Origin: Octopus sinensis | Lineage: Eukaryota | Assembly (NCBI RefSeq): GCF_006345805.1 | Contig: NC_042998.1 | Span: 104,780,001-104,844,000 of the forward strand | Length of the DNA stretch: 64,000 nucleotides | Direction of reading: 5' to 3' | In this document: positions 1,655-51,339 of the stretch, piece after piece | Numbering within the stretch: the first letter of the stretch is position 1 | Layout: each line of letters opens with the position of its first letter | The notes under the pieces: model-generated | Told to the model about the DNA's origin: nothing | Databases searched by the model: none | Seen by the model: the letters and a program-made list of their open reading frames with translations, nothing else | Made by a program: the position numbers and the translations under genes

Positions 1655-2790
1655 TTCTCAGTTAACATTATGTCTGGTTTCCAATTCTTTATTTCATGGT
1701 CGCACTGAATCATAAAATCCCATAGGGTCTTTGCATTTCGATGATGCCTTCGGGTTTATATTCGTACCACTTTTTTGCTCCGTCAAGTTCATACTCGTTG
1801 CAAAGTATCCAATGGACAATCATTGCTATATTGTCATGACGTCTCATATTCTTTCTGGGATAGTGGCGTACATTGAGTGGTAATATGCCATAAGGTTTCA
1901 CCATTTAGTCCACAAATTCTGTACTTACCACTTTCTGATGTGTTGTCTATTTCCGTTTCCGGTTTTTAATCACTTTTACCCATCCATAGCCATATTTTCT
2001 TCTCACTGTATCTTATCTTCAACATCCCTATGAAATTGTCCATGCATTCTTTCCTTTATCTACCTATTTTCAGTTTCATTCATTCTCAAGTGCTTGTACA
2101 GTGCTTTATCTTTAAAATCTTCCATCCTACACGAGCCTGACCTTCTTACTTCCAACAATAGTGGTTCTGTGGCATATTTTATATACCATGCTATGTTGTT
2201 TTTTTCTGCTCTAATGCTGTGCTCGCATCCACTCAGTTCGCTTCCCCTCTTTTTCTTGGTATATAGTCTGTCTGTGTCACATTTTGGGTGGAGCATACCA
2301 TATCTAATCAGCAACTTCCTTGTCTTTCTGTCTAAGCTCTTTAGTTCGTCTACTGTCCATGCGATTAGCCCTGCTCCTCTAAGTAGTGAAACCGCCCAGG
2401 GGTTAATATCTTCAGTCTTATTCGGTCCGTTTAATTTCTCAGTCTCAGTCTGCGCACGTATTCCACCTTGAATTTTTCCGTCATTTCTCTCTCCATGAAT
2501 TTATCCATTTCCAATATCCACATGTACTAACAGTCCGTCTCTTCTATCTGCTTCATTACCTCCTCCGACGGTATCGCTAGCTCGTCCATAAATTTAATTT
2601 TGCCCCTCTTCATGACTAACACACCACACTTTTTCAGACCGAAGTCCATTCCGATATCAACACTGAAAATATACACCGTATCAACGAAGAAACTGACTTG
2701 GGATTCATTTTTATAATAAAGTTTGAGGTCATCCATAAATAACAAGTGGTTGATTTTCTGTTGGCGGCTTTTGAATATATACGCAGCCTT
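1655..2790 (-). mobile_element. R4/Dong-type (RLE) non-LTR retrotransposon, 5'-truncated pseudogene
   Basis: RT motifs INHLLFMDDLKLY...FGLKKC (ORF 2527-3069), LHPKCDTDRLY (2060-2314), RRHDNIAMIVHW..C...KWYEYKPEG (1710-1904); abuts an (AAT)n array. Confidence 0.85.
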
Positions 2791-2800
2791 ATCATCATTA

Positions 2801-2852
<52 letters not shown>

Positions 2853-2868
2853 CATTATCATTATCATT

Positions 2869-2964
<96 letters not shown>
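2790..2964. repeat. (ATT)n/(ATC)n compound microsatellite
   Basis: Seen directly. Confidence 0.95.
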
Positions 2965-3520
2965 GAGTGAGAGAGCAGTGCATGCCATCAAAGTGACATT
3001 GTGGTAAAATATACGAAGTCCAGTATACCCATCATGACTACCCGTCTGACAAGGGTACACTAGGCACATGCATCACAACCATATGTGCGCGACATAGTGA
3101 TCTCATATCAAGATAAACAGCACATGACCTTGCAGGTGGGGCCCAGTTAGAATTTTCTTCTGGTCGAGTAACCCATCCGCTCAAAAGGTCCCTGAATAAG
3201 GGTTGTTTAAGGATGTTGAACGTAACACCCATATTTCCAGAGGTGAATTATTCAAACCCCAAAGAATCCCTCTCAACACATGACTATGATGCTCCCGCAC
3301 TACATCTGCTCGTGATCAGAGATACACATATCGTCAGCCACTAAGGGACATGCTGAACTGGTTACGGTCAAACAACTGACAAGCAAATCTGTGGTATTGA
3401 GCAGAATATTTGCTGTAGCTCATCTTTTATACCAAGACAAACCAATGTACATGATAACACTTCCAATCAGTTAAAAATCAACAGCCATGAGAGCCACTGT
3501 CTGGTACTGCATCAGGGCAT
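2965..3520 (-). mobile_element. Non-coding interspersed repeat ending in (AAT)n, probably a LINE 3' UTR or non-autonomous derivative
   Basis: Clearly homologous second copy at 47683-48136; both copies end in an (ATT)n tract on the same side. Confidence 0.75.
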
Positions 3521-3535: not shown

Positions 3536-4442
3536 TCATTTACTTTTAATCTGCATGTTTGATGCAATCACTTGCCGGGGCACACCCAGCGCCCTAGGGC
3601 AAGTGAAGGTTAAGAGTTGTTGAAATATAGCTGAAAGCTTGGGGAGAGGAAGTAGAGAAATATCTCCATGTAATACAACACAAACATTTACATTGATAGG
3701 GTTTTTCTAAGGATGTGGGCAGTACTTGTTAGCACAATCTTTTGGATTTCCTTGAGACATGGTTCTCCAGGGATATTGTCTAGATGTTTCTGACATCCCT
3801 TTTTTTATCATACCAAGGGCACCTACAATAACAGGAACAGTTTTTGTTTTAAGATTCCACATCTTTTGTGTTTCGATTTCCAGGTCCTTATATTTACTAA
3901 GTTTGTCAAATTCCTTTACAGATATGTTTTTATCAGTGGGGATGCTTACCTCTATTAGTCTGATATAAAATTTCTTTGCATCTGTCTTAAAAAATTTATT
4001 TTGTCGATAAAATTTGTTTCTTTTGTCATACCTTCTAAGCCGTTGGGCTTTCAACTGTATCCGTTGTTTCAACAGTTCCTTAGTTGCAGGGAGGTTTATG
4101 AGATCTTTGATTTTATATTTTTGCTTGATTTTTCTAGCTTTTCTCGACTTAATATTCACTCCTCTAGCAAGCTCATCGAGAACTGAAACATCCGTCCGCA
4201 GAGATTCAATCTCTTTTTGTATCGCTACTTTCCACTTAGGAGGTTCATTGACATGCCTGGCCTTTTTCTTTGTCATCTTAATACCTAGTTGGGTAATTAC
4301 TACTTTAGCAGTGGAATAGATGAGATTATTTAATGTTGTCAGATCATTCCCCTTATTTCTTAAGGGGCAACGTTATATGTCATCATTGTGTTGTTATTCC
4401 TTGTGCCGTTTGAAAACTTTGGTAGCGGTTCTCTATTTAACC
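3536..4442 (-). mobile_element. R4/Dong-type LINE with internal deletion of the RT domain
   Basis: ORF 3707-4276 joins the pre-RT block (PPKWK...KQRIQLKAQRLRRYDKR..FYRQN..F.TDAKKFY) directly to the RLE endonuclease (LIEVSIPTDKNI...KYKDL...PVIVGALG); (ATT)n on both sides. Confidence 0.85.
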
Positions 4443-5066: not shown

Positions 5067-5935
5067 AGGCCACTATACGTAATGATTTATGGTTATTAAT
5101 TGTAGCACATATAGCTGCTTTCTCCTCTCTTACTTCAGTTCCTGACGAGACAAACTTAGAATATCATCCCATTATGGTCAATAAAATGAATGTAAGTCAT
5201 GTTCTGAGACCAATTCAATCGATTCTGTACTACTTTAGGATGTGCTTCTTTGCATGCACATTTTTCAGAAAGAATTCAGAACAAGTAGCGCTTAAGATAT
5301 ATTTCATGGGGTATCAGTAATGAAAGAAAAACAAATCTGTCGATTTATATATATGAGAAATAGAAAATAAACAGAAGTTTATATTATAGCTCCTACGCGC
5401 GTTTCCTCTTTATGGTTGTTTAGCACACTGCGGCAAGTATTCCAACTCAATTTAGTCACTGAACGTATAATCAGATAACACTTTATTGCATAGGTACTAA
5501 TTTATATTTATTTATTTATCTTTATGAATGCTAAAAATAATATTGAAAATTCTAAGACCTGGCCACATTTAAAACGAGAAAAAGCATGACTTAAATGTAT
5601 ACATGTTAAAGTTTTACCTGTCTATTGGTATTGTTTTTTAGTCTCTGCTAAACGTTGATCAAGTAGACTTATGATCAAAGATAGTCCAAAGATAATTGCG
5701 TACGTTGAGGAACGCAATACCAAATAATTTCCTTCGTTTGATAAGAATGTAGAATGTGAATTGAGCACGATTTGTCTACTCTTTCTGTAGGCAGCTATTC
5801 TTTGTCCCCTGGTAGCTGCTTAATGAACTTACATGAGGATTTTGAAAGTGAACATATTTCTATTGCTCGAAATTCATAAATTTCACATAGATAAATTTCA
5901 TTATTCAACTGATAAAACCGAAGTTTTTAACATAC

Positions 5936-6055
5936 CTGTTGGTTCTTTTTTCCACTTATATCCAGTAAATGATGAATACGTACAAGTAAGTCTGTTACAT
6001 GTCTTTAAATTTATAATTTTACCACTCCTATAGCATCTGTGATTCAATCTACAGC
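5936..6055 (-). CDS. Internal coding exon of a putative secreted Cys-rich protein (module 2)
   Basis: Acceptor ttaatttttccag|, donor ACAG|gtatgt, 120 nt, phase 1-1, open frame (G)CRLNHRCYRSGKIINLKTCNRLTCTYSSFTGYKWKKEPT(G). Confidence 0.75.
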
Positions 6056-6578
6056 CTGGAAAAATTAATAAGTGAATTTCTTATAATCACAAAATATTGT
6101 TCAGAAAATATAGAAATCTTTCTCAACTAATCAAATTGAAAATATTGAATATTCACTTAAGATTAATTAAGTTACTTATGTTTTATATTTGGATTCTGCT
6201 AGAATGTTTCAGTGCAGCGATAGCCAGCTTATTGAAACAATAAAATGGGATACAAAGGTGGATATTTATATTGGTTTGTGCAACCTTTAACATGAGTACA
6301 GAGACCCTAACACGCAAACACAGATACACAAAGATAAAACATACATAACTACACAAGTGTGTATGTGTGTATATGTATGTGTAAGTGTGTATATATGAAT
6401 AGTTCAGATTATCATCTATCTGACAGCCAGGAATTAAGATATATGTGTGTGAGTGTAGATATGTGTATGTGCATATTTATATGCACTCACACACACACAT
6501 ATATATAAATATACATGCATTCATACATACATACATACACACACACACACATACACACACACACATATATATATATAT

Positions 6579-6800
6579 GGAGGCGCAATGGCCCAGTGGT
6601 TAGGGCAGCGGACTTGCGGTCGGAGGATCGCGGTTTCGATTCCCAGACCGGGCGTTGTGTGTGTTTATTGAGCGAAAACACCTAAAAAAGCTCCACGAGG
6701 CTCCGGCAGGGGATGGTGGTGATCCCTGCTGTACTCTTTCACCACTCTAAAAGGCGGTGCTCCAGCATGGCCGCAGTCAAATGACTGAAACAAGTACAAA
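6579..6800 (+). mobile_element. tRNA-derived SINE (family C head joined to a family B 3' tail)
   Basis: A-box TGGCCCAGTGG and B-box GGTTTCGATTCC; ends AGGCGGTGCTCCAGCATGGCCGCAGTCAAATGACTGAAACAAGTA like family B. Confidence 0.85.
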
Positions 6801-6802
6801 AA

Positions 6803-6835
<33 letters not shown>

Positions 6836-7118
6836 TTCAACAATTGAGGGTAAAATTAATTAATTAATCAATTTCACCAAGTATTCAGTATGCAAAGGGA
6901 CCATTTAAGGCGAATTCAAATTATTACATTATATAAAAGGGCTTAGTAAAATAAATTACTTTGCCGCATACTGAACTCATTAGAAATAGCAGCTAAAAAA
7001 ACCTTTTTTTAAACTATATCTAATACTTAAAGAAAACCTCTCTCATATAGTGTTTGCTCAATTCAACTCACGAAAGTATGGGGGTAGAGATATTAAAAAA
7101 TCAAATGCAAAGGTTATT

Positions 7119-7171
7119 TGAGAACGTACGTTTCAAGATTAGTCAAACTCGACATTTCTATCATCAGCTCA
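7119..7171 (-). ncRNA. Type I minimal hammerhead ribozyme (mirror copy)
   Basis: Reverse complement of 7234-7286. Confidence 0.8.
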
Positions 7172-7233
7172 GAACTCCCTGGTTTGGATTTGAAAACATG
7201 TGTTTGTGTTTTCAAATCCAAACCAGGGAGTTC

Positions 7234-7286
7234 TGAGCTGATGATAGAAATGTCGAGTTTGACTAATCTTGAAACGTACGTTCTCA
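7234..7286 (+). ncRNA. Type I minimal hammerhead ribozyme
   Basis: Stem I UGAG/CUCA, core CUGAUGA (7238-7244), stem II AGA..GUC/GAC..UCU, GAAA (7271-7274), palindromic stem III ACGUACGU, GUU triplet with cleavage after 7282. Confidence 0.8.
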
Positions 7287-7478
7287 AATAACCTTTGCAT
7301 TTGATTTTTTAATGTCTCTACCCCCATACTTTCGTGAGTTGAATTGAGCAAACACTATATGAGAGAGGTTTTCTTTAAGTATTAGAAATAGTTTTAAAAA
7401 AGGTTTTTTTAGCTGCTATTTCTAATGAGTTCAGTATGCGGCAAAGTAATTTATTTTACTAAGCCCTTTTATATAATG

Positions 7479-7520
<42 letters not shown>

Positions 7521-7522
<2 letters not shown>

Positions 7523-8625
7523 AACAAAAACGCGATAGAGGGAGTTAAAACAGTCGGACAATTGACGACACAAAGGCGGACAAGAGAAACAACATTTAGG
7601 ACAGGCAAAAAAGACAGTTCATTCGTGGCATTCTTTCTTCGGTCAAGTACCAGAAGTCAGGACCATTTCGGACAGTTACACTTGAGATGGTTCGATTTGG
7701 TTGTCCCCAAAAAAGTCCAAGCTAAGAGCCCTTTGGAAGAAAGCTAGCGAAAGTGTACGGCAACAAAGACAACAAAAAACAAACAAAGAAAAAACGGAGG
7801 ACATGGTACAGAAATACGAATACAAACAACAAGAAATAACAACAGGCGTCTTTCGACTAATAACGATTCAAATTGAGCTGGCGTGTATGTAGTGAAAGCC
7901 TAAAGGCAGGAACCTGGTAGATGGACACAAGACGTGTTGACAGTCGGCAGTCAGGCCAAGAAAGAAAGATCGTGGCTGGCTGGACACCGGTCACGTGAAA
8001 AGAGGAGAAATGAGTAGGGGACAGCGGAATTGAAGGATTAGAAAAAGATCAGAAACAAAGGGAAAGGTGCAGGGGAGAAAAACGAGTGGGAAAGTGGGAA
8101 ATAGTGGGAGTTAAAGAAAGAGGGCGAGGAAATGTGAGAGAAGGAAGAAAAATGAGAGGGAGAATAAAAGATAGAGTAAGGGTCGTACAAAATTTAGATA
8201 CATACCTACTATAAGGTGAGCACAAGGCTGAACATACGCCGCTATATATATATATATATATATATGCTTAGAGAAGCATACCGTGCATATATACATGGAA
8301 CAAAAACGCAATAGAAGGCATTAAAATGTTGGACAGATAGACGACAGAAAGGCGGACTAGAGAAACAACAATTAGGGGAGGCAAAAAAGGCGGGTTATTC
8401 GAAGTAGGTCGTTTTCTTCATTTATTTTATAAAACGGAAATATTGTGAATTTTCCTTGTGCACAGGTGTCTAAGTGCTCGCTGCACAGTATGCTTTTCTA
8501 AGCGAGAGATGTTTTATTTGGTGTCTATGCACATTTGCACGTTTGGTTAATTTTGTTTTGGTTTCTCCAACATAGTTTTCCTTGCATTGTGGGCATGTGA
8601 TACATTATATCATTATATACAGACG
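7521..8625 (-). mobile_element. Penelope-like element 3' remnant: GIY-YIG fragment plus direct repeats
   Basis: 8420-8620 translates ITCPQCKENYVGETKTKLTKRANVHRHQIK...LDTCAQGKFTIFPFYK; diverged direct repeats start at 7521 and 8297; interior 7840-8240 is homologous to 41690-42200. Confidence 0.75.
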
Positions 8626-8929
8626 ATAACACAGCTGGTTTGAGGTTCATTACTATTGTTTCGGGCGTTAATTAATTTTCGTTGTGGTGATGAATCGATC
8701 ACATCGACTCCAATGTTCAATTGGTACTTATTTTATCGACCCCGAAAGGATGAACAAAAATATATCATGTAAAAAGTTTGTTTTCCTCGAGTGGAATAAG
8801 AGTAAAATTTAATAATTAGGACTCTTCACATAAGTAGAACGTCGTGGAAGTTGACTCTCCCATCTTGGGGCAGGGTCAACTGCAACTGAAACAGTCACAG
8901 TGAACCTCAAACCATTTCTGTTATTGTTT

Positions 8930-9125
8930 ATAGTTCACCACTTTCAGAACTTCTCCTGCTTTTGGATCACTAGCGTTTAGTCAACTGTGGGATACGTGCC
9001 ATAATGGTACTCCTGTGTGACTTTCGTACACGTTGTGTATTCGGCCATAACATGGTGGGATAAATTCGTATGTACTTTAGTCCGTACACATTGTTAGTGC
9101 ACAGGTGCGCCATCTCTGACTCTGT
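8930..9125 (-). mobile_element. Possible Tc1/mariner catalytic-domain remnant
   Basis: Degenerate DGAPVH...LWPN motif only. Confidence 0.35.
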
Positions 9126-9469
9126 CTGGATGCTTTTACTATGTAATTACCTTGATTCTATTGGATCCTGAAAATCTAACCCACACACACATACATAAAT
9201 ACATACATACATATACATATATATATATGCATACATACATACATACATACATACACACACACATATATATATATAAATATTTATATATATATATATATAT
9301 ATATACGTGTGTGTGTCTGTGTGTACACACACACACGCGCGCGAAAAGTGTTCATTAAAGATTTCCCGTATCTTTATCCTTTGAAGGCAGATCGAGAAAT
9401 TACTTTTTTGTAACCAAACACTTTGGTAGACTATGGTAGATTATGCCATATAAAACATCTTTTACTTTT

Positions 9470-10200
9470 AGTGTTGTTGAGAAAAGTTTGTATTTTCAAA
9501 GTTGTCGTATTTCGGTAATTTCAGCCAATCAAGGACAGGAAGTCTATTGTTGGGGTACCTGGTGAAGTAATCTACAGTTACCTTGATACTTTTGTGGATG
9601 GGGTTAGCTACGTGCTGGATGCTCCCTATTATGCTCCTCTCTGTTTTTACATTATCATTCCTAGAGTTGGTCTCAACTAGAATATTAACGTCATTTACAC
9701 ACCTACAGTAATATAAAAGAGTTTTGGACTGTTCTGAAGTCTTCTGTCTCACCAGGTCATGAAAATGCAGGCCACATCTCCAGCTACACCGACACCAATG
9801 GCTGAACCTTGAACCTGCATGTATAATTTCCTGTTAAACTTTACTATGTGGTTCTTCTATGTGGTTTTTATACTAGCCCCTGTTGCATGTGCAATCATTC
9901 TTTTCGCCTGATTGTTGTTCTCAGTGTCCAGCCACTCCAGCGCTCTGCGTTGCTTTTCTTCACTGCTGAGGTGATTGTGGGTGGTCTTCCCCTCTGTAAT
10001 CTGATGGGTGCAGAATCTACTAAAGTCATGGTTGTCTAGATAGTTGCTGTCATAGCTTAGTTTAAGAAGGAGTCCCAGTTCCCTCGTGTTGACTGCACGG
10101 AACTCTACTTCAGTCTCACAGATAATCTCAATGTGGAAAAATGCTGAAGAAATGCATTGAGAGTGAAGTAGAGTTCTGTGTTCAAACATATTCTGCCATA
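9470..10200 (-). mobile_element. Penelope-like reverse transcriptase fragment
   Basis: QGSAIGVGVAGDVACIFM, YCRCVNDVNI (decayed YVDD), IANPIHKSIKVT.DY...NNRLPVLD. Confidence 0.7.
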
Positions 10201-10343
10201 CACGGCTCTCAACATCTACTACTATGTTTGAATATGTTTAAATAATAGATATAACTTTCTATACCTAATTATCGAAAAATAGTAAATTCTGGCACGTATT
10301 ATATGATATAAATTTAGAAAAGAAAAAAGAACAACAAGCCTAC

Positions 10344-10463
10344 CAGTTGCTTCATACCGCACATTAGATAGATCTCCTTTTCGTTCACAAACATAAACCA
10401 TGCAAGAAAGGGCCTGTTTTATTTTTTTCCCATATGGCTGACAAACTCCATGTATCCAACAAC
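10344..10463 (-). CDS. Internal coding exon of a putative secreted Cys-rich protein (module 1)
   Basis: Acceptor tttctttttaattcatag|, donor ACTG|gtaggc, 120 nt, phase 1-1, open frame (G)CWIHGVCQPYGKKIKQALSCMVYVCERKGDLSNVRYEAT(G). Confidence 0.8.
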
Positions 10464-10601
10464 CTATGAATTAAAAAGAAACACAATGAGTTTTGTATGT
10501 TTTCTATCAACAATGTTTATGAAATACATGCTAGTTCTTGTAAATTATCAAAGAGTGAGTTCCATTTTCAATGATAATGAGTTTTAATCGTAGTTCTAAA
10601 C

Positions 10602-10808
10602 AAGGCAGCGAGCTGGCAGGATCTTTTGCACTCGGGAAAAATGCTTAGCGGCATTTTGCACGTCTTTGCGTTTTGAGTTCGAATTCCACCGAGCTTTGCT
10701 TTCATCATCTCTAGGTCGACAGTATGAGTACCAACTGAGCACTGTGGTTGATTTAATCAACTTGTCGCCTACCCTGAAATTGCTGACCTTGTGCCAAAAT
10801 GTGAAACC
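10602..10808 (+). mobile_element. SINE family A
   Basis: AAGGCAGCGAGCTGGCAG head, GAGTTCGAATTCC B-box, GAAATTGCTGACCTTGTGCCAAAA tail. Confidence 0.85.
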
Positions 10809-11169
10809 AACATTAGTTAAAACTAGGATGCGTGAGAAAATGTCACCGTTTTTGCTGCAAAATTATACATAAATATGTTTTTTTAAATTTAAATGTTATT
10901 ATTTCAAATTTTGAGTATAACAATTGATCAGTAAGTAAATGTATAACTGTATATAAGACGACAGGCGAAATTGAAATTTGACTTGGTATATAAAACAAAA
11001 GAAAATGCGAGTTTCTTTCTTTTTACTGTCAAGAAAGGTAACGACTGAACAAATAAGTAACTGCTAATCTGCGCATTTGTCGTTGTATGTGTCTCACTAT
11101 ATCGTTTGGTGCATGAACATGTGAGTTTGTGTGTCTCTGATTGTGTGTGTGATACATATGCGCAAATTT

Positions 11170-11540
11170 ATATTCACCGACACCAGGATTTTTACCTAAC
11201 ATTTCAAATCATATGCCATGCATATCTGGTTTTATATCAAAGTGATCGTGTCCTAGAGACATGCCTTAGCAAAAATGACTTTTCAACAGGCTGAACGCCA
11301 ACCCCGAATTTCTAAATCTCTCTACTCTGAAGACGGGGACCGAATTTATCGTAATGTCTATATGTATCCACTATTGATTGCATATTCTCGACTTTTTGTG
11401 AACTACATCTGCCAACATCATTTCGTAATTCTGAATCCCCAGAAACAGCTGTCGGACCTATAATACCATGCCTTCTTCCCCTAGTTTTCTGTGTCATTGT
11501 ACTCTGTAAATCTGCTCTGTTCATATACAAATATCTATAC
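11170..11540 (-). mobile_element. Possible CR1-like RT C-terminal remnant
   Basis: Weak: IDITINSVPVFRVERFRNSG resembles the ITIN....VE.FKYLG motif. Confidence 0.3.
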
Positions 11541-11590
11541 ATGACTTTCCATCGTCTGAATATTTTCAGTCTTTTTTTCCCACTATTTAC

Positions 11591-11591
<1 letters not shown>

Positions 11592-11623
<32 letters not shown>

Positions 11624-11730
11624 TGTATGTATGTATTATGTATGTATGTATGTATGTATGTATGTATGTATGTATGTATGTATGTATGTATATATTATGT
11701 ATGTATGTATGTATGTATGCATGTATGTAT
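11592..11730. repeat. (TATG)n microsatellite
   Basis: Seen directly. Confidence 0.95.
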
Positions 11731-11989
11731 ATACGATATTCTGGTATTGTGTTCCTCTTTGTTGGGAATCTATAGGTATTGGTTTTTAAAATTGAATACT
11801 ATTTTCTATTAGTAGCTTTCAAGTCGTTCTTCTCTAGTATCTACATCATAAATAATTTTCCTGATTAGACAATATGGAACAATACTTTATGAATGTGCTA
11901 TATGTCATTATTAGAAGTTCAGGTACGGATGTGTATAATTTATATCCTTTTTGATGTTGATATTTTTAAATACTATTATATTGAGAAAT

Positions 11990-13000
11990 TATTATTTTGC
12001 ATAGCTCATCTTCGTGCATTTCAAAGTTGGATGTAGATTGTTTAGCTAGAAGTGACTTCTTCCAAACAGCAGATTTTCTCCGAATTAGAAAACAATCATC
12101 TTTTCCGTGCACCCTGTCTATATTCTTTTTAATGTGTACCATAGGTTTCTTCTACTCTTTGATAAGCTCTTGTCTAGAGTTTCCCATTACTGAATTTTCA
12201 TAAACTGCAGCAAATTTGCTCCCATTACTACGTTTCTAATTTAAAGTTAACTTTCCGCGTTGTAAAAATAATGGTATAGCTATGGGGAATCCAATGGAAA
12301 TTACTTCTCTGTTTTTCGATCTAATATTTAATTACCACTATTGCTAAATCACGTGGAAAATTTGTATTGTGGTTTACTACAAGAAATTTAACCAGCACCG
12401 AATTTGCTCTGTTGTTTTAGATAGAATGGGAAAGCAATGTCATCCCGAATGAATTTCAGTATGTGGGTGTATAGAGGTTTCAAAATTACATCAGCAACAT
12501 TGCTTAGTTGATGGGTAGATCATACCGGACTAACTATGAGAGATCTAAATTTTGGGTACGTTAGTTGTAGCAATTTTATGTATTCACCTCCTTGTTCCTT
12601 TTTTGCGTGTTGTATTTCATATGACATGTATTTGTTAGTTAGCCATAAATGTTGTCAGGTTTGGGTTCAAAATTCGTAATACATTCACTTTTATAAGTGG
12701 TGGTTTATGACGTTTTGAAACCAGATTATCAGGCTGCTTTATATTGTGGTGGTCTACACTTGTGCATATTTCAGAGTAAATGGTTGTTCTTCAACTAATC
12801 TTCATCGAAATACTGATAATATTCAGCATCCATTATGACAATGACAATAACACCACTCCTATCTGCTTCTTTAGTCACTATTGTATCATCCTTTTGGAGA
12901 CGTTTAAGTGTAGACTCTCAAATTTGGAAAATACTTCATCTGACACTATTTCATCTGCTTAAGCGGGAATTAGGAACAGACATCAATATACTAGTTTAGA
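11990..13000 (-). mobile_element. Penelope-like reverse transcriptase, decayed
   Basis: KRLQKDDTIVTKEADRSG; KEQGGEYIKL...KFRSLIVSP..THQLSNVADVILKPL..ILKFIRD; VMGANFAAVYENSVMG; RKDDCF. Confidence 0.75.
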
Positions 13001-14119
13001 CGTGTATTTCTTCTCCTTAGCATCATAGATGATAAGCACAGTGACACAGTTGAAACATATTAACCGGGTCAACCTGTTGATAAGGTGTGTAAAACTATGG
13101 GTTGCAAATGATGTCATCCGATTGTAGGACGAGTGTTTCTGCGTCGTTATCTTACTTTTCCATATCCTACGAAGAAATTCTATTATTATACGTAAAAACA
13201 GCAAATAATAAATTTGGCAGTGTATGCAAAGCGTCGTAAAACAGGAATTAATAATTAGAGACACATTTAACAAAGCCTAGCAACGTCAGCAAGATATTTA
13301 CTATTTCGTGTGTTTGAGGGAAGAGACAACTGTATCTAGAAATATAACGAACAATAGATATAAAAATGCAAAGAAATGCAATCAAAAGTAAGTATGTCAA
13401 ATAAACTAACCCTTGTATCTAGTTGAATAGATTCCGTTAGTATTTTCTTTTTTCACGCATGGTTTTGATAAACCTAAAAAGTATAAAGAGTCGAGAAAAT
13501 AAATAATTAATAGTAAATGAGTGGTAAATATAAGAAGGTAAATAGTTGGCTTTGGACGTGTTAACCCACACATTTACGCGTGCGCGCACGCACGCACACA
13601 CGCACGCACGTACGCACACACATTGTCCAATATATTATTTGAAAAACTTTTCTAGAATTAGAAGTAATCAATTTAAAATTAACATGATTTATCCCTATAT
13701 AGATAAAATCATTACAGCGGAGCAATAATAATAGAACTGTATGAAGAACAACTGTATTGATATCACAGTAAAATTGAATATTAATTCCATGCGACCAGCT
13801 GCAATACCTGTATTGTATACGTGAACAGCTAATGGAAAGTTGTGGTACTTAATCTTCCACAAAAGAATTTTCGTTCTAATGTGGTGCGGTCAGTTGAAGT
13901 ACGAAAAAGAAACGGTTGGGTAATTTACTACTCTAGGGTACACTCACAAGCACTTTCGCACACAATCTAATTATAAATTAGATCAGAGCACCTAATTACA
14001 AATTTACACACATATCTTAATTGAATTTATAATTAGATTTGCACCTCCCTTTTTAGACAAAATGAACTTAAATAATATCATTGATGAGTAATGTTCCTCC
14101 ACTATTACTTCTGTTTAGC

Positions 14120-14121
14120 CC

Positions 14122-14187
<66 letters not shown>

Positions 14188-14188
14188 C
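14120..14188. repeat. (CT)n microsatellite
   Basis: Seen directly. Confidence 0.9.
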
Positions 14189-14879
14189 CATGATGGTATA
14201 CTTGGCCTGTGGAATCCTCGCCTGACACGATGTTCCAATAGCGATGTTCTAGAAACAGCTATTAGAGACTTTGTACACCTTTTTATTATATAGCTAAATT
14301 AAATGCCCTCGTCAAATCTTGCCAAACCGTCTGCTTATTATTTCTGTTTTTATCTACACACACACATATAGACTTTGAAATCGAATGAAACTCTTTTCAC
14401 GTAGCTGGATTAAATCCTTCAATTACGATATGGTCTGTTGATCTTTCGTTTCAGTATGCAGCACCAGTTTGTTCAGTTAATCAACACGTTTTTTATTACC
14501 AAGCATTACATTCTTGTATCAAACAACTAATTAAATTAGTGACAAAAAATTTTTAAACTTCATTAGTATGTTAATAATATTTAGTTTTATGCATACTCAT
14601 AGTACATTATATCAAAATAGAGTAGGTTTATTTTACTACATCTAGTAGGACTGAAACAGTTCATTTTTCGTAATTTTTCTACACATTTAAACAGAAGTCA
14701 GTAGATTCCGTTGATAGTTATTTATGAGTAATAATTGTATATTTCTTTTTGTATTTGTTGCTTAGTAATTAATATTGTTTTATTTTGGAATGGTCAGTTT
14801 CTTTTCCAACATAACGCAAGCGTTGTTCTGCTTTTCTTTTAATTACTGTGTCAGAAGGAAGGATTAGTCCTCATGCTAT

Positions 14880-15249
14880 TTACAGCCTTCCCCTTGAGAC
14901 TAGGAAGTTTGATACCGTTAATGTTCCGGTTCAACTGTTACAAGTCAACAGCTGCAGGATATATATGATAAATTCCAGACAACCGATGTTCTGGAAAAAA
15001 ATAGGACTGGAAATAGCGGTTCCTACAAAGCTAAGAAGTTGGATAATACAAGAGTGATGAAAGCTGAATGGATCAGGAGTGCCTTACTGAAGGAGGTACA
15101 AGACTAACCAGCTCTGAGGTATAGGGGCTATTATAGTAGCAATGGGAGAGTAGAGTTGTCACTCTTATTGGCCAGATGAACGGAACATGTCTGTGAGTGA
15201 TTTAATGCCAATCAGTTGATTGGTTCTTTTTCTGTATGAGGGCCATTAC

Positions 15250-15288
<39 letters not shown>

Positions 15289-15900
15289 CATGCGTGTGTG
15301 TGTGTGTGTGTGTGTGCGTGCGTTCACGTAACAATAGCACCATCTCAGATTGGCGCAGTTTAGGGTGGAATTGGACGCACGAATTAGATGCACTAAAGTG
15401 TGCTTCGAAATGCCAGAGTACATTTCCGTAAAGATTGAAAAGTAAAGGAGTTCATTTAGTATGTGGTAAAGTTTTTATCATAGTACTTGAATGCACTGGA
15501 AGGAACATTGTCTGAACCACTGGATCTGTTGATCTGAAATAAGAGTAGCATGATGTGTATGCAGCACAGTGGAAACCTTGGTCGAATTGAAGTAGATGAA
15601 TTTAGAGAGAACTGGTCACATGTGCTCAGTGTGGAGTTAGACGCAAAATGGGCTGAGAAAATGAAAAATTTCTGCATACATTTATTTCTCACAGAGTCAT
15701 TATTGTTGAGAGGTGGAGGAAAAGAGCATTCTGCAAAGTTGGTGAAAATTCTTTTCGCAAGAGACCAGAAAGATTGGATGCAGCTTTGGAGTCTGGAATG
15801 CTTGAGAGCTGTGCTATGCACGAGGCGGTCCTTTGCAGACTGGATAGGGGTCTTATGGGAAATGGATTGTACATTTACGCTCAAGAATGATATAAAATAT
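14880..15900 (-). mobile_element. CR1-like LINE ORF2 fragments
   Basis: SFWSLAKRIFTNFAECSFPP...FSAHFASNSTL (ORF 15456-15884) and C-terminal TSELVSLVPP...FFPRTSVVWN; resembles 59720-60540. Confidence 0.65.
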
Positions 15901-16683
15901 GATATAAGGGATCTGATAAGCCATTCATGTGTGACTAATGTGTCGGTGTTTAAAAGGATGGGGAACCGAGATGCTTGAATCTATGTTTTTATTTTTGGTA
16001 TCATAAGGAATTATAGAAGGCTGTGATACGTGGATAGGTTATGGAAGTCCAGACCAGAGATCTGGCCCGAAAGCCTACAGCTGCATGAATTCTACGAAAA
16101 GCACACTCAAGGTCGTAAGGGTCATGTTTAACCTACCTCCTTCATAAAAGGGCGGAATATCTACACTTTATGAACGGGGAACACTAATCAGTTTATCAAA
16201 TTTTATTATTACACTGCTGTGAACTTTTCAATGACTTTTCAAGCTACGGATATTTATTTCTCTTACGTTTGTTTTGCTGTCTTATATAAAGCAGTCGTGT
16301 GTTGTTCAGGTTGCGTGTGATTTGGTGTGTCATCGTGTTAATGTTTTGTTTCCATGAATACAGCTTTATTTTTTTGTTTTTCATTTTATTTCTGCTTTTC
16401 TTGGTACAACAATAATCACGCAAATGAAAATATGAAAATATAAATGGGCGCAATGTAAACAAAGCAGAAACACGACAACATAACACGCACATGGGTCTTG
16501 ATCACCTATACATATATAATACTCGGCAACAGAGCGAAAACCAGTTGGAGAATGAGAAGTCATGAATAGAAGTCGTTACAATTTTGTGCTTAAATATTTC
16601 TAACAAACTGGTTAGTAAAATAGGCAACAACCTGTACTAAAACCTGTGCGATTGTTTTATATGATCAGAAAAATCTTACTCAC

Positions 16684-16721
16684 GTAAGTAGAACTAATGT
16701 GTTGCAACATCAAACTGGAAC
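16684..16721 (-). CDS. Candidate small exon of the secreted-protein gene
   Basis: ataactacag| ... TAC|gtgagt; 38 nt, phase 1-0, (G)SSLMLQHISSTY; 84-nt intron to the signal-peptide exon. It needs a further phase 0-1 exon, which was not found. Confidence 0.45.
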
Positions 16722-16805
16722 CTGTAGTTATAGGCTGTTCACAGATGAAAGTGACAAAGGATTATGGAGTTTACCTATTTACATGAGATTACAGTGTTTA
16801 CCTAC

Positions 16806-16866
16806 CTTGCGATGTTGCTGGTGTGTATGCTACACATAGGCTGATTAAGAGCAGCAAACACCTCAT
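16806..16866 (-). CDS. First coding exon (signal peptide); the exon spans 16806-16876
   Basis: Acceptor ttttcctttcag|, ATG at 16864-16866, MRCLLLLISLCVAYTPATSQ(G), donor CAAG|gtaggt, phase 1. Confidence 0.75.
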
Positions 16867-16944
16867 CTTTTTTTTCCTGAAAGGAAAATTATCACAAAAG
16901 TAAATGTTATGTACACACACACACGCACACACACACACACACAC

Positions 16945-19280: not shown

Positions 19281-20246
19281 AAAAACATCTGTTTCAACAC
19301 ACGATTTCACATCAAGAATCTTGCAAAACAAATATAAAATATATATATATCATATCATATCATATCATATCATGTTGTTCTGCATTGCTCAACACTCCCT
19401 TCATCAGAGACCACAATCCGATCCGGAGAATTTCTGTCAGTGACTCTCTTTCGAGCAATACCAAGCAGCACTATTAATACTAAAACATCATGGAGCATGT
19501 TTTAATGACATTGCAACACATTCTTACTTCTGACGACTATGTTGCTATTACCACAAACTTTGAACTGTTGCAAAGATATAAACTATTCTGTAGTAAGTAA
19601 GTATTTATAATCTGCTATTCCATTCCTTTATTCTTTTGTTGACATTTCTCATAACCGTGGCGACACATACTGTCATTCTTTCCGTCACAGACCACCGACA
19701 ACTCATCTATTCTGCCACCATTGCACTCATCTATTTTCATACATCATACTGTTCGACTAAATTCTATGCCCTCGGTAATCTAAGCCTGAAAGACACGGGC
19801 ATCTATTAGAGAGCTGCGAAAGTTGTATGGACCCGAATCAAAGTGTTTTAAATAATACATGTAACATCTATTAAATTCGATGAGTGCCTTCCTCTTTCGT
19901 TTGTCCTTTCACTTGTAAATATAGATTGTGTATGTGTGTGTGTTTGTGTGTACATGAGGTACGAAGTGCCTGATTTCCTATTACAAGTATAATCCAAGGA
20001 AAGTTTAGAAATAAGGATTTTATATTTTGAGATTGCAGTCTAACTGATCAAGGAAAATTTAAACTTACCTAAGTGATTTGAGTCGTACTTGGAAGCGCAG
20101 ATACCAGTAATGACTGAATAATTTCCGGAAAGCTTCAAATCATATATAAGCACACGCATTCATAACTTACTCTGCCTGTCTTTGCTTATTTTTTCTTCCT
20201 CTCTCTTCCAACCTACCAGATTGTTTCTTTTCTGGCATAATTACAC

Positions 20247-20321
<75 letters not shown>

Positions 20322-20463
20322 ATACATACATATATATATATACATGTATATATATATATATAATACATGTATATATATATATATGTGTGTGTATGTGTCT
20401 GTATAGATACATGTATATGTACATATATCTATAGCTATATCTATACATATACATAAGCATGCA

Positions 20464-20515
<52 letters not shown>

Positions 20516-21054
20516 GAGAGAGAGGGGGGTTGGGGGAGATACAGATATATACTTACCTCCCTTCCTACATACATGCATCCATAATAGATACATACATATA
20601 TACATACATGCATACATACGTATACAAATGTGAGATGTGAAAATTTGCTTCGGTATTTTAAAGTAATGGACATCAAAGAGATATTTAAGAGGGACACTTC
20701 TGTCAATAAATCAACTAGAAAACATCATAACAATGAAACCATAAATATTTACAGTCATCATAACAAGCTATTGTTTATTTAAATATTATAATATCTGTGC
20801 AGCCTACTTACGCCATTTTTGCATTCATAGTATTTTCGACTGATGTGCAACGGATCAGGAAATGTAATTTTATCTTCAGAAAGTGATAGTGAAAGGTTTT
20901 CAACCATCATTGCCAATGTGTGTGTACATGCCTGCGTGTATGTGTATGTCTGTATATATATATGTATTATGTATATGTATACACTTACACACACAACATA
21001 CACACACGCACACACACATATACATATACATACATACATACAGACAGGCATACA

Positions 21055-25989: not shown

Positions 25990-26560
25990 TACCATTGGTT
26001 TCATGTTAAGAAAATTTGGAAAATATCCTGCTATCTTAATTTTTCAGGCCGATTACGTGGAGAAAGGTATTCGACTCAATTGTGGAAAACAGCCTTCCTT
26101 GAATTTGTCATTAGGGTAAATTTTGTGATTAATTTGTTTGTATTATTTCGCATTATTTTGTTTTTGTTCTGGGCATGGTGTTCTTAAACTTGTTTGCTGA
26201 AATAGTTCGTCATTGGAGTATATTTCTTCTTTGTGTGAAGCTCGTGTGCTATGTGTGTTCCCGTTTAGGAAAGGGGCTATCCTGGTAGGGCAACCCTCGC
26301 GTGAAGGGGCTCTATGAAATATTTGAGTGTAAAATATTGACTATATATGCAGGGAGAAAAAGGTTTCATTTCTAATGTTTAGGACGTTAGTTGTTGATTG
26401 TATGTTTAATTTTTCAGTAATAGAGAGTTGACATTTGGTACCCCATCCTCTGTATTTTTTGCCTTTAGCAATGATTGTCTATTCTATCTGGGGGTTGCTT
26501 ATTCCACCTTCTTTCAATGTCCGTATCACATTTGACATGAATGCCGCATGTTTTTGATCT
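25990..26560 (-). mobile_element. Penelope-like remnants (GIY-YIG tail and linker-like segment)
   Basis: IE*TIIAKGKKYRGWGTKCQLSITEKLNI...VLNIRNE at 26330-26560; weaker KIKIAGYFPNFLNMK near 26000-26080. Confidence 0.5.
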
Positions 26561-26714
26561 GGATGACGCCAAATGGTTTATATATATATATGTGTGTGGG
26601 GGGTGTATACATACACACACATTATACGATATTGTATTATTTTATATATTATATTGTGTTATATTATATTATATTATATTATATTAAATTATATTATATT
26701 GAATTGTATTATAT

Positions 26715-28050
26715 TATAGAACGAATCATCAAGAAGAAACAGTTAATGTTCCTAGATGAAGATGACTTACTGAACGGCGCACAGCATCGCTTCGGCCCAG
26801 GAAGAAGCTACCTCACACAACTCCTACGACAGTATGACTGGGTTTTGAAACAGCTGCTTAACCATGCAGATGTCTATGTGATATATCTTGATTATACAAA
26901 GGCCTTTGATAATGTAGGTCATGGCATGGTAATTCACAAGCTGCGAGACCGTGACATAGCTGGAAACCGTGTGAGTGACTGCATGACTTCTCAAAAGATA
27001 GAAGTTGCTGCCAAAGGTGCCCTCTCTGAGAAAACACAACTTCTAAGTGGTGTCCCACAGGAAAATTATCTTGGGGCTATTACTATTTATAACAGCTCTC
27101 TAAGACATTCCCACGGTCACCCTGACAGCCACTTTCGCAAGCTACGCCGATGATACAAAATTATCATAAGCAATAAAAAATCCAGACGATGTTGCAAGCT
27201 TAGAGCGGGACCTGATTACAATATACAAGTGGGCAGAAATAAACTACATGCATTTTAATGCTGGAAAATTTCAAGCACTGCTCTATCAGCTCAAAAGAAT
27301 GTACTACAGCCTGCATATACAGGGCTCGAAGGCACCGCAGTATCAGAATCATGAGCAGTGAGACACTTGGGGACCAGTATGCGCAATGATGAATCATTTC
27401 ATAAGCACACTACCAAGATGGTAGTAAAGTACAGACAACTTGCAGAATGGATACCAAGGTCCCTCGAGACAAGAGACTAAGGGCTTATGTTATCCTTGTG
27501 GAAGATCTTGTTCTCAGGCACCTGGAATAATGCTGTCAGCTATGGTTTTCTCATGGTGCCATATTAACAGCAGGGCTTGAAGCGGTCCAAACCAACTACA
27601 CTAAAAAGGTCTGTAACAGTGCAGGAGATGAACTACAGAGAGAGACGCAAAAACTACGACTTTACTCCCTGGAGCGAAGATTCAACATATATTTAATAAT
27701 CTATATAGGGAAAATTCTGGAAAGGCTAGCACTTAATTTTGGCATTGAGGTTTATTCAACTGCCCGAACTGGACGCCTTTGTATTGTACTCTTTCTAAAT
27801 CCAGGAACAGGTACTGAAACAGCTTAGGTTTTAAAGGCCCACAGCTCTTCAATGCCCTGCCGCGAAAATTAAGAAATTTACACACTATAGATGTGGATAT
27901 CTTCAAAAAGGTACTGGAAATCCTCATCTCGTCCATACCGGATGAACCAGCGGTCCGGTATGAGATACAGATGAGGGCATCCGTATCAAACGGCCTCATA
28001 CACCAGAAAGGTCAACAGACAAGGCAAAAGCACATAGAGGAATGATGCTA
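26715..28050 (+). mobile_element. CR1-like LINE, 5'-truncated RT pseudogene
   Basis: AQHRFGPGRSYLTQLL...VIYLDYTKAFDNVGHG...SGVPQ, then (YA)DDTK and GFKGPQLFNALP. Confidence 0.9.
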
Positions 28051-38427: not shown

Positions 38428-38459
<32 letters not shown>

Positions 38460-38479
38460 CACACAGAGGCTGATGTATT

Positions 38480-38945: not shown

Positions 38946-38958
38946 AAACTTAGGTAAA

Positions 38959-45018: not shown

Positions 45019-45399
45019 GTATATGTTTGAAATATTTACATGTATGTGTGAGCATTTATTTATCATATTTAAGAGATAAAATATATCGCCGCTTTTACCT
45101 GAAGTAATCTATTTCGTTGACAGCTGAGTAAGTAAACGTTTCTATATTTTGTTTTCCCGAAATACGTACGTATGCCCGCATGTATGTTGATACTCAGCTT
45201 CAGGACTGGCAGAACTTAAACAGAATTGTTAAGTAAACCCAGCAGTGCCCACTCGATTATATCTTCAGATCTTCATTATTTTTTTTTTTTTTTCGTAAAT
45301 TTAAATGGTACGGGAAACTTGTTGGATAATCTGCTACTATTTTCAGAAAGTCGAACAACGGCATATAACATCCTTCATTCGCTCGTTAATATGTATGCA

Positions 45400-45420: not shown

Positions 45421-45454
<34 letters not shown>

Positions 45455-49800: not shown

Positions 49801-51339
49801 GAATGAATGGAAATCATTAATACACAGGAATTAAATGATGCAGAAATAGACACACGTGTGACTTCAAGCATAATGTGTTGAAATTAGGAATTTATTTTAG
49901 ATTAATTATTTTTCAATAACTTGTGTTTCTTTTATGGTTTGTTTGGAATAGTAAAATATATCTTGACCTTAGTCTTATCATACGATCTAATTTGTTGTTA
50001 TTTATCATTAAATTAACTTTAAGTGAACAAACCTATGATTTAAGGTGTTCCAGTATAAGCAATTTATCTTACCATTCCCCATAGTCCTGAGCATGTGATT
50101 TGAGAACAATTGGTCAATCATTGTGAGAAAACTGAGGAAGCATATAGTGTTTCCTTGCTTGTTTCTTTATTGCATTGTTTAAGTAAATGGTACCTTCCTG
50201 TGTTGTGGAAGTTCCAGAAAAACTGAAGATTTGATAAACTTGCCGGAAATATTATAACTAAGAAAGAAGTAATCTTTTAAGATAAAGGTATAAAAGTCTC
50301 CCGACACTGATAAATGTCTATGCTATTTTATCCAAGACAAATGGTAAAAATTCTTTCAGAGAATAGGGAAAGTACTTTCATATAAGTGATAAATTTGAAA
50401 CACAGTTATGTTCTCGAAATAACATGTTTAAAACCTAAATAATTAACTACAGAATATGTACTGAGTTCATTATTAGATATATGTTTCATATACCGATAAT
50501 ATATACGAGCGGGACCCGTGAATATTTCACGGAATTAATGGTAAACCTATTGGGTTATTTTTGAAAACTTTATCTAAAAAACTGAAAGCGTTGCCGGTGT
50601 TGTGTCTGTATGGAAAGATGGTCGCTTATCTGCTACTGATTGAAAAAATGAAAGAAATTGGAATATGATGATTACTTAATGCACTTTATATACTTTCTTC
50701 ACAATTTTATAGACTTAATACACAGCACTCATAAAATAAATATTAACTCTTATTTTTCCCATGTTTCCTCATAAACAAGCAAAAAGAATCCTATACCTAT
50801 GATACAACCTTTAGTTAAACTGCATATATCAGCTACGTAAATAAGAGTGGATGTTTCACGGAATTGCACTTATATGCATGCGTTAAGTGATAGGTGATAT
50901 TAAAAAAAGACAGTTCAATTTAAAAAAATACACTTTTCACTATCCAGTCACCACCGTCACCTCCACCGCCACCACCTCCACCACCACCACTTCCACCACC
51001 ACCTCCATCTCCACCACTACCACCATAATCATCATTATCATAAAGATACACAATTACTATTATTTTGTGTAAAATAAACAACAATTTTTACATAATGCGA
51101 ACGTCATTCTTTATCAGACAGCAATGGCTATTTAACGTTTATATTTTACTCTTGAACAAAGTTCACTGTGAACCATTATGTGACATCGCGTGGACAACCA
51201 ATCAGTTGCATTCTGAAACCTTTCATATCATCTCTAAATACTAATTTCTGTTTGATAAAGTACGCTTAATTTTAAGTATTGCATGATGTAAATAATTAAC
51301 TATATTTCATATATAAAAATAATATTACTATTTACATTA

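Follow-up and report, generated by a model that had tools for sequence, protein, structure and literature searches.

A front-half gene model for Octopus sinensis LOC115222431, encoding a predicted secreted, basic protein of tandem four-cysteine, Fn1-like modules

The minus strand of the stretch of Octopus sinensis DNA analysed here (64 kb, hereafter the window) carries exons which, as judged from the exact identity of their translations, are the 5′ half of LOC115222431, a gene already annotated as 'uncharacterized'. All lines of evidence taken together are probably best explained by this front half of LOC115222431 contributing to a secreted, basic protein of six modules with a predicted Fn1-like fold, putative shifted disulfides and a candidate extracellular binding role. 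A sequence-only reading had proposed that the minus strand encodes, in several exons, a secreted protein rich in cysteines, and these exons are indeed identical to those of LOC115222431; 'hidden', as it was called there, the gene is not, being a RefSeq locus. When translated, they show 100% identity to XP_029648495.1 and XP_029648493.1; among 1.84 billion representative sequences searched with phmmer, XP_029648495.1 was retrieved (E=1.4e-66); and window positions 1-26866 correspond to CM016860.1 at 100%. The features of the locus, in the direction of transcription, are as follows.

50033..50094, minus strand: probable first 5′ leader exon (inferred), donor CATAG/gtttgt after 50033, start as drawn approximate
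45099..45214, minus strand: probable non-coding 5′ leader exon (inferred), acceptor tttaag/TTCTGCC, donor CTTCAG/gtaaaa, splices to the acceptor at 16876
16806..16876, minus strand: first coding exon, starts at 16876 after acceptor AG at 16878-16877, 10-nt leader
13411..13473, minus strand: cap exon, 63 nt, phase 1-1, acceptor ctttttag/GT, donor AAGG/gttagt
10344..10463, minus strand: module 1 exon, 120 nt, phase 1-1, acceptor ttcatag/GT TGT, donor ACTG/gtaggc
5936..6055, minus strand: module 2 exon, 120 nt, phase 1-1, acceptor ttccag/GC TGT, donor ACAG/gtatgt
L001 28269-42785, outside the window, past position 1: modules 3-6 and the 11-nt terminal exon, from exon mapping to the annotated protein

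Read directly off the minus strand, the three exons proposed earlier (first coding exon, module 1 and module 2) show canonical AG/GT sites, phase-1 boundaries and, for the two module exons, lengths of 120 nt, so that coordinates, lengths, phases and cysteine patterns hold and the exons, once joined, give the open frame proposed. The first coding exon opens with ATG at 16866, its coding part (16866-16806, 61 nt) specifies MRCLLLLISLCVAYTPATSQ plus the first base of Gly21, its donor CAAG/GTAGGT follows 16806 in phase 1, and its translation is identical to residues 1-21 of XP_029648493.1. The module 1 exon encodes GCWIHGVCQPYGKKIKQALSCMVYVCERKGDLSNVRYEAT with the pattern C-x5-C-x12-C-x4-C and shares 80% identity with the module of the O. 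bimaculoides orthologue, all cysteines being retained, while the module 2 exon encodes GCRLNHRCYRSGKIINLKTCNRLTCTYSSFTGYKWKKEPT with the pattern C-x5-C-x11-C-x4-C; its donor (5936) splices on to module 3, about 1.4 kb past window position 1, and the annotated isoform X4 omits it. The direct splice from 16806 to 10463 does not stand, as the annotated mRNAs insert the 63-nt exon 13411-13473, whose product GLSKPCVKKENTNGIYSTRYK, in frame as (G)LSKPCVKKENTNGIYSTRYK, contributes the lone Cys26 and which was found in every retrieved isoform and in the orthologues. The frame of the proposed 101-aa product is open, but relative to the annotated 280-aa protein that product lacks the Cys26 exon, four modules and the terminal cysteine exon. 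Exon calling by eye was accurate to the base, and a low-information exon of 63 nt with one cysteine is the kind that such reading misses.

Upstream, the segment 45099..45214 corresponds to the extra N-terminal part of the O. vulgaris model CAI9717957.1 (P0012), and is read as 5′ UTR because a 1-nt difference in the window puts a stop codon in the upstream frame; the translation of 50033..50094 is a 100% match to residues 1-20 of the same extended model. Of 3079 open candidates bounded by AG...GT in phase 1-1, counted over both strands of the window, only the two module loci show the four-cysteine pattern, and it appeared in 0/30 first-order Markov shuffles of the window, a result which is supportive but yields no strict p-value, the pattern having been defined post hoc. 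TG/TATG microsatellites are abundant in the window and generate many spurious cysteine-rich open frames such as (CMYV)n. Neither a phase-1 exon scan nor tblastn detected further modules in the 64-kb window; the four further module exons of the gene (120/117/117/114 nt) lie past window position 1.

The coding region of LOC115222431 spans about 32.8 kb and consists of nine exons of 61, 63, 120, 120, 120, 117, 117, 114 and 11 nt, all with canonical splice sites and an intact frame, and every intron is in phase 1. This map translates exactly to the annotated 280-aa precursor XP_029648493.1 (P0011) with the end of exon 8 at L001 41391, before a GTGAGC donor, a boundary set by hand from the sequence; an end at 41394 would read ...KSGCS. 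Isoforms X1, X2 and X4, all database models, were retrieved, the numbering implying an X3, and the annotated differences consist in the skipping of whole modules (X2, X4). As had been proposed, each four-cysteine module is one phase 1-1 exon. The suggestion of module duplication by exon shuffling is likewise upheld in the form of exon or segment duplication: the regions of modules 1 and 2, including intron flanks, match those of modules 3 and 4 at 67-79%, modules 1/3 and 2/4 with their intron flanks being collinear duplicates.

The encoded protein comprises a signal peptide, a 21-residue one-cysteine hairpin cap, six tandem modules of about 40 residues and a final cysteine on its own mini-exon. 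Signal-peptide cleavage probably occurs near Ser19/Gln20 by our own reading of the -3/-1 rule. The mature protein is computed to be strongly basic (about 30 kDa, pI 9.5, net charge about +34, 26 cysteines) and contains no N-glycosylation sites. The modules follow the consensus C-x2-N-G-x-C-Y-x2-G-x8-9-C-x4-C-x15-16, ending in G, with a cysteine spacing across modules of C-x5-C-x10-12-C-x4-C-x15-16.

Orthologues are O. vulgaris CAI9717958.1 and O. bimaculoides LOC106869873, the latter with 63-73% identity; the exons, whose absence from related octopods, together with a lack of junction-spanning reads, had been named as grounds for giving up the gene, are conserved in both species. In the octopod paralogues LOC115232515 and LOC106869870 every module cysteine and both end-capping cysteines are invariant, and the O. 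bimaculoides paralogue likewise has one module per exon. More distant multi-module relatives of 799-1213 aa come from limpet and another animal, and include Patella proteins (XP_050416036.1, KAK6173882.1) as well as a 799-aa transcript contig; the Patella proteins share the 40-residue module (phmmer E 9e-6 to 1e-23), in about 23 copies with a more degenerate spacing than in the octopus protein. These relatives were detected only by exhaustive phmmer search, as word-indexed homologue searches with the joined 101-aa peptide or a 39-module alignment as query returned none. No paper on LOC115222431, on the accessions or loci of its relatives or on the module family in general was found.

The family had not been recognised by the sequence-only reading, and no Pfam family matches the octopus module as far as profile searches tell. 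With hmmscan at E<=10, no fn1 (PF00039) match in Pfam-A emerged for the 101-aa peptide, P0001, P0010, P0011, P0013 and the paralogues; a related signal came solely from Fn1_2, which matched the C-terminal region of the distant relative P0004 below threshold (E=0.012). Names attached to relatives by databases point elsewhere. UniRef labels the orthologue A0A0L8HLT6 a 'Sushi domain-containing protein'; Sushi/CCP was rejected, there being no Sushi match at E<=10 for P0013, P0010 and P0011 and the unit measuring 40 residues versus about 60 with a conserved Trp. The Patella names 'extracellular matrix protein A / prestalk protein' reflect automatic similarity to Dictyostelium repeats; the 24-residue ecmA/prestalk repeat was rejected too, with no such Pfam family at E<=10 for the Patella relative P0005.

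Structure prediction suggests what the profiles do not. The AF2 models have a pLDDT of 82 at full length and of 91 for the di-module encoded in the window, with values <50 for residues 1-18, as expected of a signal peptide; the cap forms strands at residues 26-32 and 35-45, and in each module of the di-module the strands run in the order short-short-short-long-long. The protein is hence predicted to be a string of all-beta modules, each with a short A-B hairpin and a C-D-E sheet with a long D-E hairpin, the topology of Fn1 and of subdomain 1 (SD1) of VWC. In Foldseek searches of the PDB with the di-module, the top three matches are Fn1 pairs (2cku, prob 0.99, TM 0.47/0.52; 1fbr, prob 0.95; 9a3x_B, prob 0.96), with weak E-values of 0.09-0.17 and a predicted model as query, followed by VWF C4 (6fwn); NEL/NELL chains are also matched. 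The whole elongated model produced mostly meaningless global matches to beta-propellers. A non-overlapping set of two-module segments was aligned with MAFFT. A profile of the di-module matched among PDB sequences solely a VWF C domain (7p4n), below threshold, with five cysteines aligned at E=0.28 (0.28-1.5 over the profile searches). The earlier guess of an Fn1/VWC-like module agrees with both results.

The likeness to Fn1, as in fibronectin, tPA and factor XII, extends beyond the fold. Both are all-beta modules of about 40-45 residues with an A-B hairpin on a C-D-E sheet, which for the octopus protein is seen in the AF2 di-module model, both have four cysteines per unit, and both form tandem arrays, in the octopus protein predicted, that make up rods. 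In vertebrates each Fn1 module has an exon to itself, flanked by phase-1 introns, which is the layout of the octopus gene with its module exons of 120/120/120/117/117/114 nt. In contrast, the cysteine spacing differs, C-x~25-C-x-C-x~9-C in Fn1 versus C-x5-C-x11-12-C-x4-C in the octopus module, with which a 1-3/2-4 pattern would emerge only across the boundary between modules, and the octopus module, which occurs in molluscs, matches no fn1 sequence profile. To our knowledge, Fn1 is regarded as essentially chordate.

The putative disulfide pattern is the 1-3/2-4 one of Fn1, offset by one cysteine relative to the exon. C2 would be bonded to C4 within each module and C3(i) to C1(i+1) between neighbours, so that the disulfide unit would comprise C2, C3, C4 and the C1 of the next module. 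By this shift of one cysteine each exon unit would be covalently bonded to the next; neighbours would be interlocked, a capping cysteine would be needed at each end of the array, as provided by Cys26 and Cys279, and skipping of any module exon, as in X2 and X4, would restore a legal junction. This disulfide map is based on strand register and cysteine bookkeeping, not on model coordinates. The end cysteines conform to it, as the spacing Cys258-x20-Cys279 is the C3-to-C1′ spacing, and Cys26, at the base of a shorter hairpin, has the same relation in strand register to Cys43 as C3 to C1′. Correlated cysteine loss points in the same direction: in P0004 and Patella, where one module is missing its C3, the following module is missing its C2, and the first-in-series module of a relative has C1, C3 and C4 but not C2, three cases in all that were read by hand, the HMM having recovered degenerate modules only in part. 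An extra cysteine in P0004 ('GCC') is unexplained by the scheme. The arrangement suggested by the x15-16 spacing, C4(i)-C1(i+1) with C2-C3, was rejected on the strand register: C4 sits in the middle of a strand, about four residues ahead of the D-E turn, which puts a cysteine eleven residues past the turn out of reach. It is further disfavoured because it leaves the paired losses of C3(i) and C2(i+1) unexplained.

As to function, the leading candidate, though held at somewhat below even chance, is a non-enzymatic extracellular rod which would bind multivalently, through its basic beta-sheet faces, to polyanionic or extended ligands such as matrix, mucus, glycosaminoglycan-like polymers or microbial surfaces, and in which exon skipping would tune module number. 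On the other hand, the protein could be a component of venom, saliva or a defensive secretion of the SCREP type, with a target in prey or microbes and no role as a matrix or binding scaffold, a reading we consider unlikely. The signal peptide, the repeats in tandem with their many disulfides and the strong positive charge of the mature protein would fit, as would lineage-restricted paralogues with the fairly fast divergence from O. bimaculoides, and toxins built of tandem cysteine-rich repeats are a recognised architecture (PMC6262176). Like SCREPs of animal venoms, the octopus protein is secreted and repeats a small domain rich in disulfides in tandem (a signal-peptide exon and six modules), but SCREP domains have knottin, Kunitz or similar folds with self-contained disulfides, unlike the octopus modules with their putative bonds between neighbours, and the very large distant relatives look more matrix-like than toxin-like. 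Six accessions (UniProt, with one RefSeq accession for the salivary set) were absent from the O. vulgaris posterior salivary gland, skin mucus and ink proteome supplements, which argues weakly against venom, as the identifiers may differ.

Less probable still is a VWC-type modulator of BMP/TGF-beta, i.e. a divergent chordin/CV2-like protein binding its ligands through SD1-like modules. The octopus module has the start motif 'C..nG..Y..G' in common with VWC SD1, the subdomain through which CV2 binds BMP in its first VWC domain (PMC6270503), and the weak profile match to the VWF C domain and the Foldseek matches to VWF C4 and NEL/NELL chains can be added. However, a VWC domain has ten cysteines with CxxCxC and CCxxC motifs and SD1 followed by SD2, whereas the octopus units, repeated back-to-back every 40 residues, have four cysteines each, neither motif and no SD2; the Pfam VWC match (PF00093, E=8, 7.3 bits) is far below the cut-off of 27.6, and there is no counterpart of the N-terminal clip segment that, in CV2, helps the first VWC domain to bind BMP. 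That the exons are open frames arisen by chance, or belong to a dead pseudogene, and yield no protein, as the microsatellite-derived frames might suggest, is scarcely credible and already contradicted at the sequence level by exact identity to annotated proteins in two species, conserved orthologue and paralogue exons with all cysteines kept, the nine intact exons, the shuffles and confident AF2 models.

While the gene is known from the RefSeq and O. vulgaris annotations as an uncharacterized protein, what is added here is a family outside the existing Pfam models, common to octopods and limpets, with an Fn1/VWC-SD1 fold predicted at good confidence and a vertebrate-Fn1-like exon layout. It is conceivable, if doubtful, that the 40-residue unit represents an undescribed molluscan, possibly lophotrochozoan, domain family of Fn1-like, register-shifted interlocked units with capping exons that permit module skipping. 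If the inter-module disulfide register is right, the repeat architecture would be built to tolerate exon skipping. Should the module share ancestry with Fn1/VWC-SD1, Fn1-type modules would go back far beyond the chordates, and the family provides a handle on the question whether they predate them.

The joined peptide of the sequence-only reading, which had proposed a hidden minus-strand gene for a small secreted protein with exon-encoded four-cysteine modules (16806 joined to 10463, 10344 to 6055), returned nothing from Pfam and nothing from a word-indexed homologue search; exhaustive phmmer comparison with 1.84 billion representatives retrieved five relatives, the best of which (XP_029648495.1, E=1.4e-66) is 'uncharacterized protein LOC115222431 isoform X2 [Octopus sinensis]'. 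The gene is not hidden: it is already annotated, as an uncharacterized protein. XP_029648495.1 is identical to the proposed exons, inserts 21 residues after the signal peptide and ahead of module 1, and has more modules C-terminally, so that the exons stand but the transcript is incomplete, the 63-nt exon at 13411-13473 having been left out and further modules following beyond 5936. Isoform X1 (XP_029648493.1, 280 aa) maps to the surrounding genomic locus, L001 (GCA_006345805.1, CM016860.1:104754082-104806866), to which positions 1-26866 of the window are 100% identical (L001 26866-1), so that the window derives from this O. sinensis assembly. LOC115222431 has nine coding exons, with every intron in phase 1 and all splice sites canonical.

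Coding exons of LOC115222431 (minus strand, window positions)
16806-16866: exon 1, 61 nt, signal peptide
13411-13473: exon 2, 63 nt, cap with Cys26, overlooked by the sequence-only reading
10344-10463: exon 3, 120 nt, module 1
5936-6055: exon 4, 120 nt, module 2
Beyond the window: exons 5-8, 120, 117, 117 and 114 nt, modules 3-6
Beyond the window: exon 9, 11 nt including the stop, Ser-Cys-Ser

Exons 5-9 are located 1.4 to 15.9 kb past window position 1, and elsewhere in the window neither an additional module nor a paralogue was found. Among the annotated isoforms, X1 has 280 aa, X2 240 aa and X4 200 aa, the shorter forms omitting module 3, or modules 2 and 3.

Direct reading of the minus strand bears out the original sequence statements (signal-peptide exon, two 120-nt exons, phases, cysteine patterns) to the base, and the interpretation built on them is largely correct. 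The ATG at 16866 starts MRCLLLLISLCVAYTPATSQ, with a strong donor, CAAG/GTAGGT, after 16806; 10344-10463 and 5936-6055 are exactly 120 nt each, preceded by a polypyrimidine tract and AG, followed by GT, both phase 1-1, and encode C-x5-C-x12-C-x4-C and C-x5-C-x11-C-x4-C, respectively. When every open AG...GT phase 1-1 candidate was scanned, the four-cysteine pattern was confined to these two exons, and none of 30 Markov shuffles contained it, which, as the pattern was picked post hoc, counts as supporting evidence only. Extended microsatellites of (TATG)n, (ACAT)n and (TG)n (11594-11730, 20170-20700, 38220-38680, 45226-46190 and others) translate to pseudo-ORFs rich in Cys, for example 'CMYVCMYV...', which reach 294 aa and dominate naive ORF lists and Cys-pattern scans of the window.

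Upstream, the O. vulgaris model CAI9717957.1 uses the acceptor at 16876, the end coordinate given in the sequence-only reading. The N-terminal extension of this model maps to two exons, 50033-50094+ and 45099-45214 on the minus strand, which have canonical splice sites and splice to 16876. In the window a 1-nt difference introduces a stop in the extension frame; the two exons look like non-coding 5' UTR leaders, and the O. vulgaris model of 343 aa looks like an over-extended ORF. Leader exons at these positions would mean that transcription begins 33 kb or more upstream of the ATG.

Conserved orthologous exons, as the first reading would lead one to expect in related octopods, are present in O. 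vulgaris (CAI9717958.1, identical across the window exons) and O. bimaculoides (LOC106869873, 63-73% identity overall, 80% in module 1 and 78% in module 2). Paralogues are O. sinensis LOC115232515 and O. bimaculoides LOC106869870, the latter again with one module per exon, and all module cysteines, the lone cap-exon cysteine and the C-terminal cysteine are invariant across these orthologues and paralogues. Distant relatives from Patella caerulea and P. vulgata are 617-1213 aa long, the module occurring in them up to about 23 times. The Logan contig L002 (run SRR26897527, 2827 nt), which looks like a transcript, holds an intron-less, uninterrupted 799-aa ORF with about 12 modules; an EGF-like motif tail precedes them, and the C-terminal region after them is rich in Cys and has an Fn1_2 match below threshold (E=0.012). 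UniRef names the O. bimaculoides orthologue A0A0L8HLT6 'Sushi domain-containing protein', and NCBI names the Patella relatives P0006 and P0007 'prestalk protein' and 'extracellular matrix protein A'; A0A0L8HLT6 and the Patella cluster representative P0005, scanned rather than P0006 and P0007, gave no Sushi or Dictyostelium-repeat Pfam match, so these labels are without Pfam support.

Within the gene, modules 1 and 3 share 55% protein and 78% DNA identity and modules 2 and 4 share 44% identity, and the intron sequences flanking modules 1 and 2 (window 5509-6433 and 10286-10994) are collinear with those flanking 3 and 4 (L001 27876-28449 and 33781-35722) at 67-79% identity. Since the collinear similarity reaches into the introns, it points to an intragenic event in which a segment of two exons was duplicated in tandem before the octopod species diverged. 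Apparent remnants of mobile elements also occur in the window, the retrotransposon-like ones inside and upstream of the gene.

Putative mobile elements and repeats (window positions)
2527-3069, minus: decayed retrotransposon-like ORF, running through an (AAT/GAT)n repeat that yields poly-Asn/Asp
3707-4276, minus: decayed retrotransposon-like ORF
26548-27153, plus: decayed retrotransposon-like ORF
42497-43075, plus: decayed retrotransposon-like ORF
~61617-61804, minus: short open frame encoding a CCHC-type zinc knuckle (zf-CCHC in Pfam, E=1.7e-9), probably left over from a retroelement gag
38955-39359, 43290-44486, 52394-52611, both orientations: ~400-bp dispersed repeat, 88-95% identity, with another copy downstream of the gene (L001 46471-46883)

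Sub-threshold RVT_1 matches (E 1.5e-4 to 3e-3) back two of the four retrotransposon-like ORFs; in the zinc-knuckle frame one zf-CCHC stretch passes and a second CX2CX4HX4C-like motif is visible by eye. The ~400-bp repeat looks like a SINE-type element.

As to the kind of module, no Pfam family is significant on any member (VWC, E=8; no fn1, Sushi or Dictyostelium-repeat match), in keeping with the initial failure to recognise a family, and the module family appears undescribed. Searched against PDB sequences, a 39-module profile (E=1.5) and a two-module profile (E=0.28) matched a single family, a VWF C domain (7p4n), below threshold and with five aligned cysteines. AlphaFold2 predicts an all-beta full-length protein (pLDDT 82) with a disordered signal peptide and, from an in-register family alignment, models the window-encoded cap and modules 1-2 at pLDDT 91 and pTM 0.67, each module comprising three short strands and then a long hairpin. 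With this shorter model the three top-ranking Foldseek matches in PDB are all fibronectin type I module pairs, namely 2cku (prob 0.99, TM 0.47/0.52, rmsd 4.2 Å over 89 columns), 9a3x_B (0.96) and 1fbr (0.95), followed by VWF C4 (0.51), at weak E-values of about 0.1 that are expected with domains this small; the full-length query also finds 2cku (prob 1.00). Vertebrate Fn1 modules are encoded one per exon between phase-1 introns, and LOC115222431 is likewise organized. The early description as loosely Fn1/VWC-like is thus borne out by the predicted fold and by the gene architecture, though not by sequence-family membership, and the module is best grouped with disulfide beta-modules of the Fn1/VWC-SD1 kind.

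Of the 26 cysteines in the mature protein, the cap carries one, each of the six modules four (C1-C4) and the C-terminal end one. In the predicted strand register, C3 is located at the base of the D-E hairpin, C1 of the next module comes directly after strand E, C4 falls in the middle of strand D and C2 within strand B; Cys26, at the base of a shorter hairpin, relates to Cys43 as C3 does to the next C1, and Cys258-x20-Cys279 repeats the C3-to-C1' spacing. Read by hand, a C3-less module is followed by a C2-less module in relatives (P0004 192/234; Patella ~306/352), and the first-in-series module of P0004 (19-62) retains C1, C3 and C4 and is devoid of C2. Register, end-cysteine spacing and correlated losses suggest the pairing C2-C4 plus C3(i)-C1(i+1), with C1-C4 as fallback; C4-C1' plus C2-C3 was rejected on geometry and the correlated losses. 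Compared with Fn1/VWC, the 1-3/2-4 pattern would be retained, offset by one cysteine relative to the exon; the predicted bonds begin with Cys26-Cys43, Cys49-Cys67, Cys62-Cys83 and Cys89-Cys106. Neighbouring exon units would then be interlocked by covalent bonds, two dangling cysteines would be capped by the 63-nt exon and the terminal mini-exon, and any module-exon skip would restore a legal junction; the transcript lacking the cap exon would leave Cys43 unpaired.

The mature protein (~30 kDa, pI 9.5) contains 50 Lys+Arg versus 16 Asp+Glu and no N-glycosylation site. A putative saliva, venom or antimicrobial role, the main rival as to function, is unlikely. The accessions, as searched, are absent from the supplements of the O. 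vulgaris skin-mucus, ink and salivary-gland proteome papers, and no mention was found in the main text of the searched literature. A VWC-style growth-factor modulator is a minor and quite improbable candidate. The product is secreted, without catalytic motifs, and is predicted to form a rod of beta modules; the proteins related to it are extracellular, very large and built of many modules. Tentatively, it may be a multivalent extracellular binding or matrix-associated protein, the length of which would be tuned by exon skipping.
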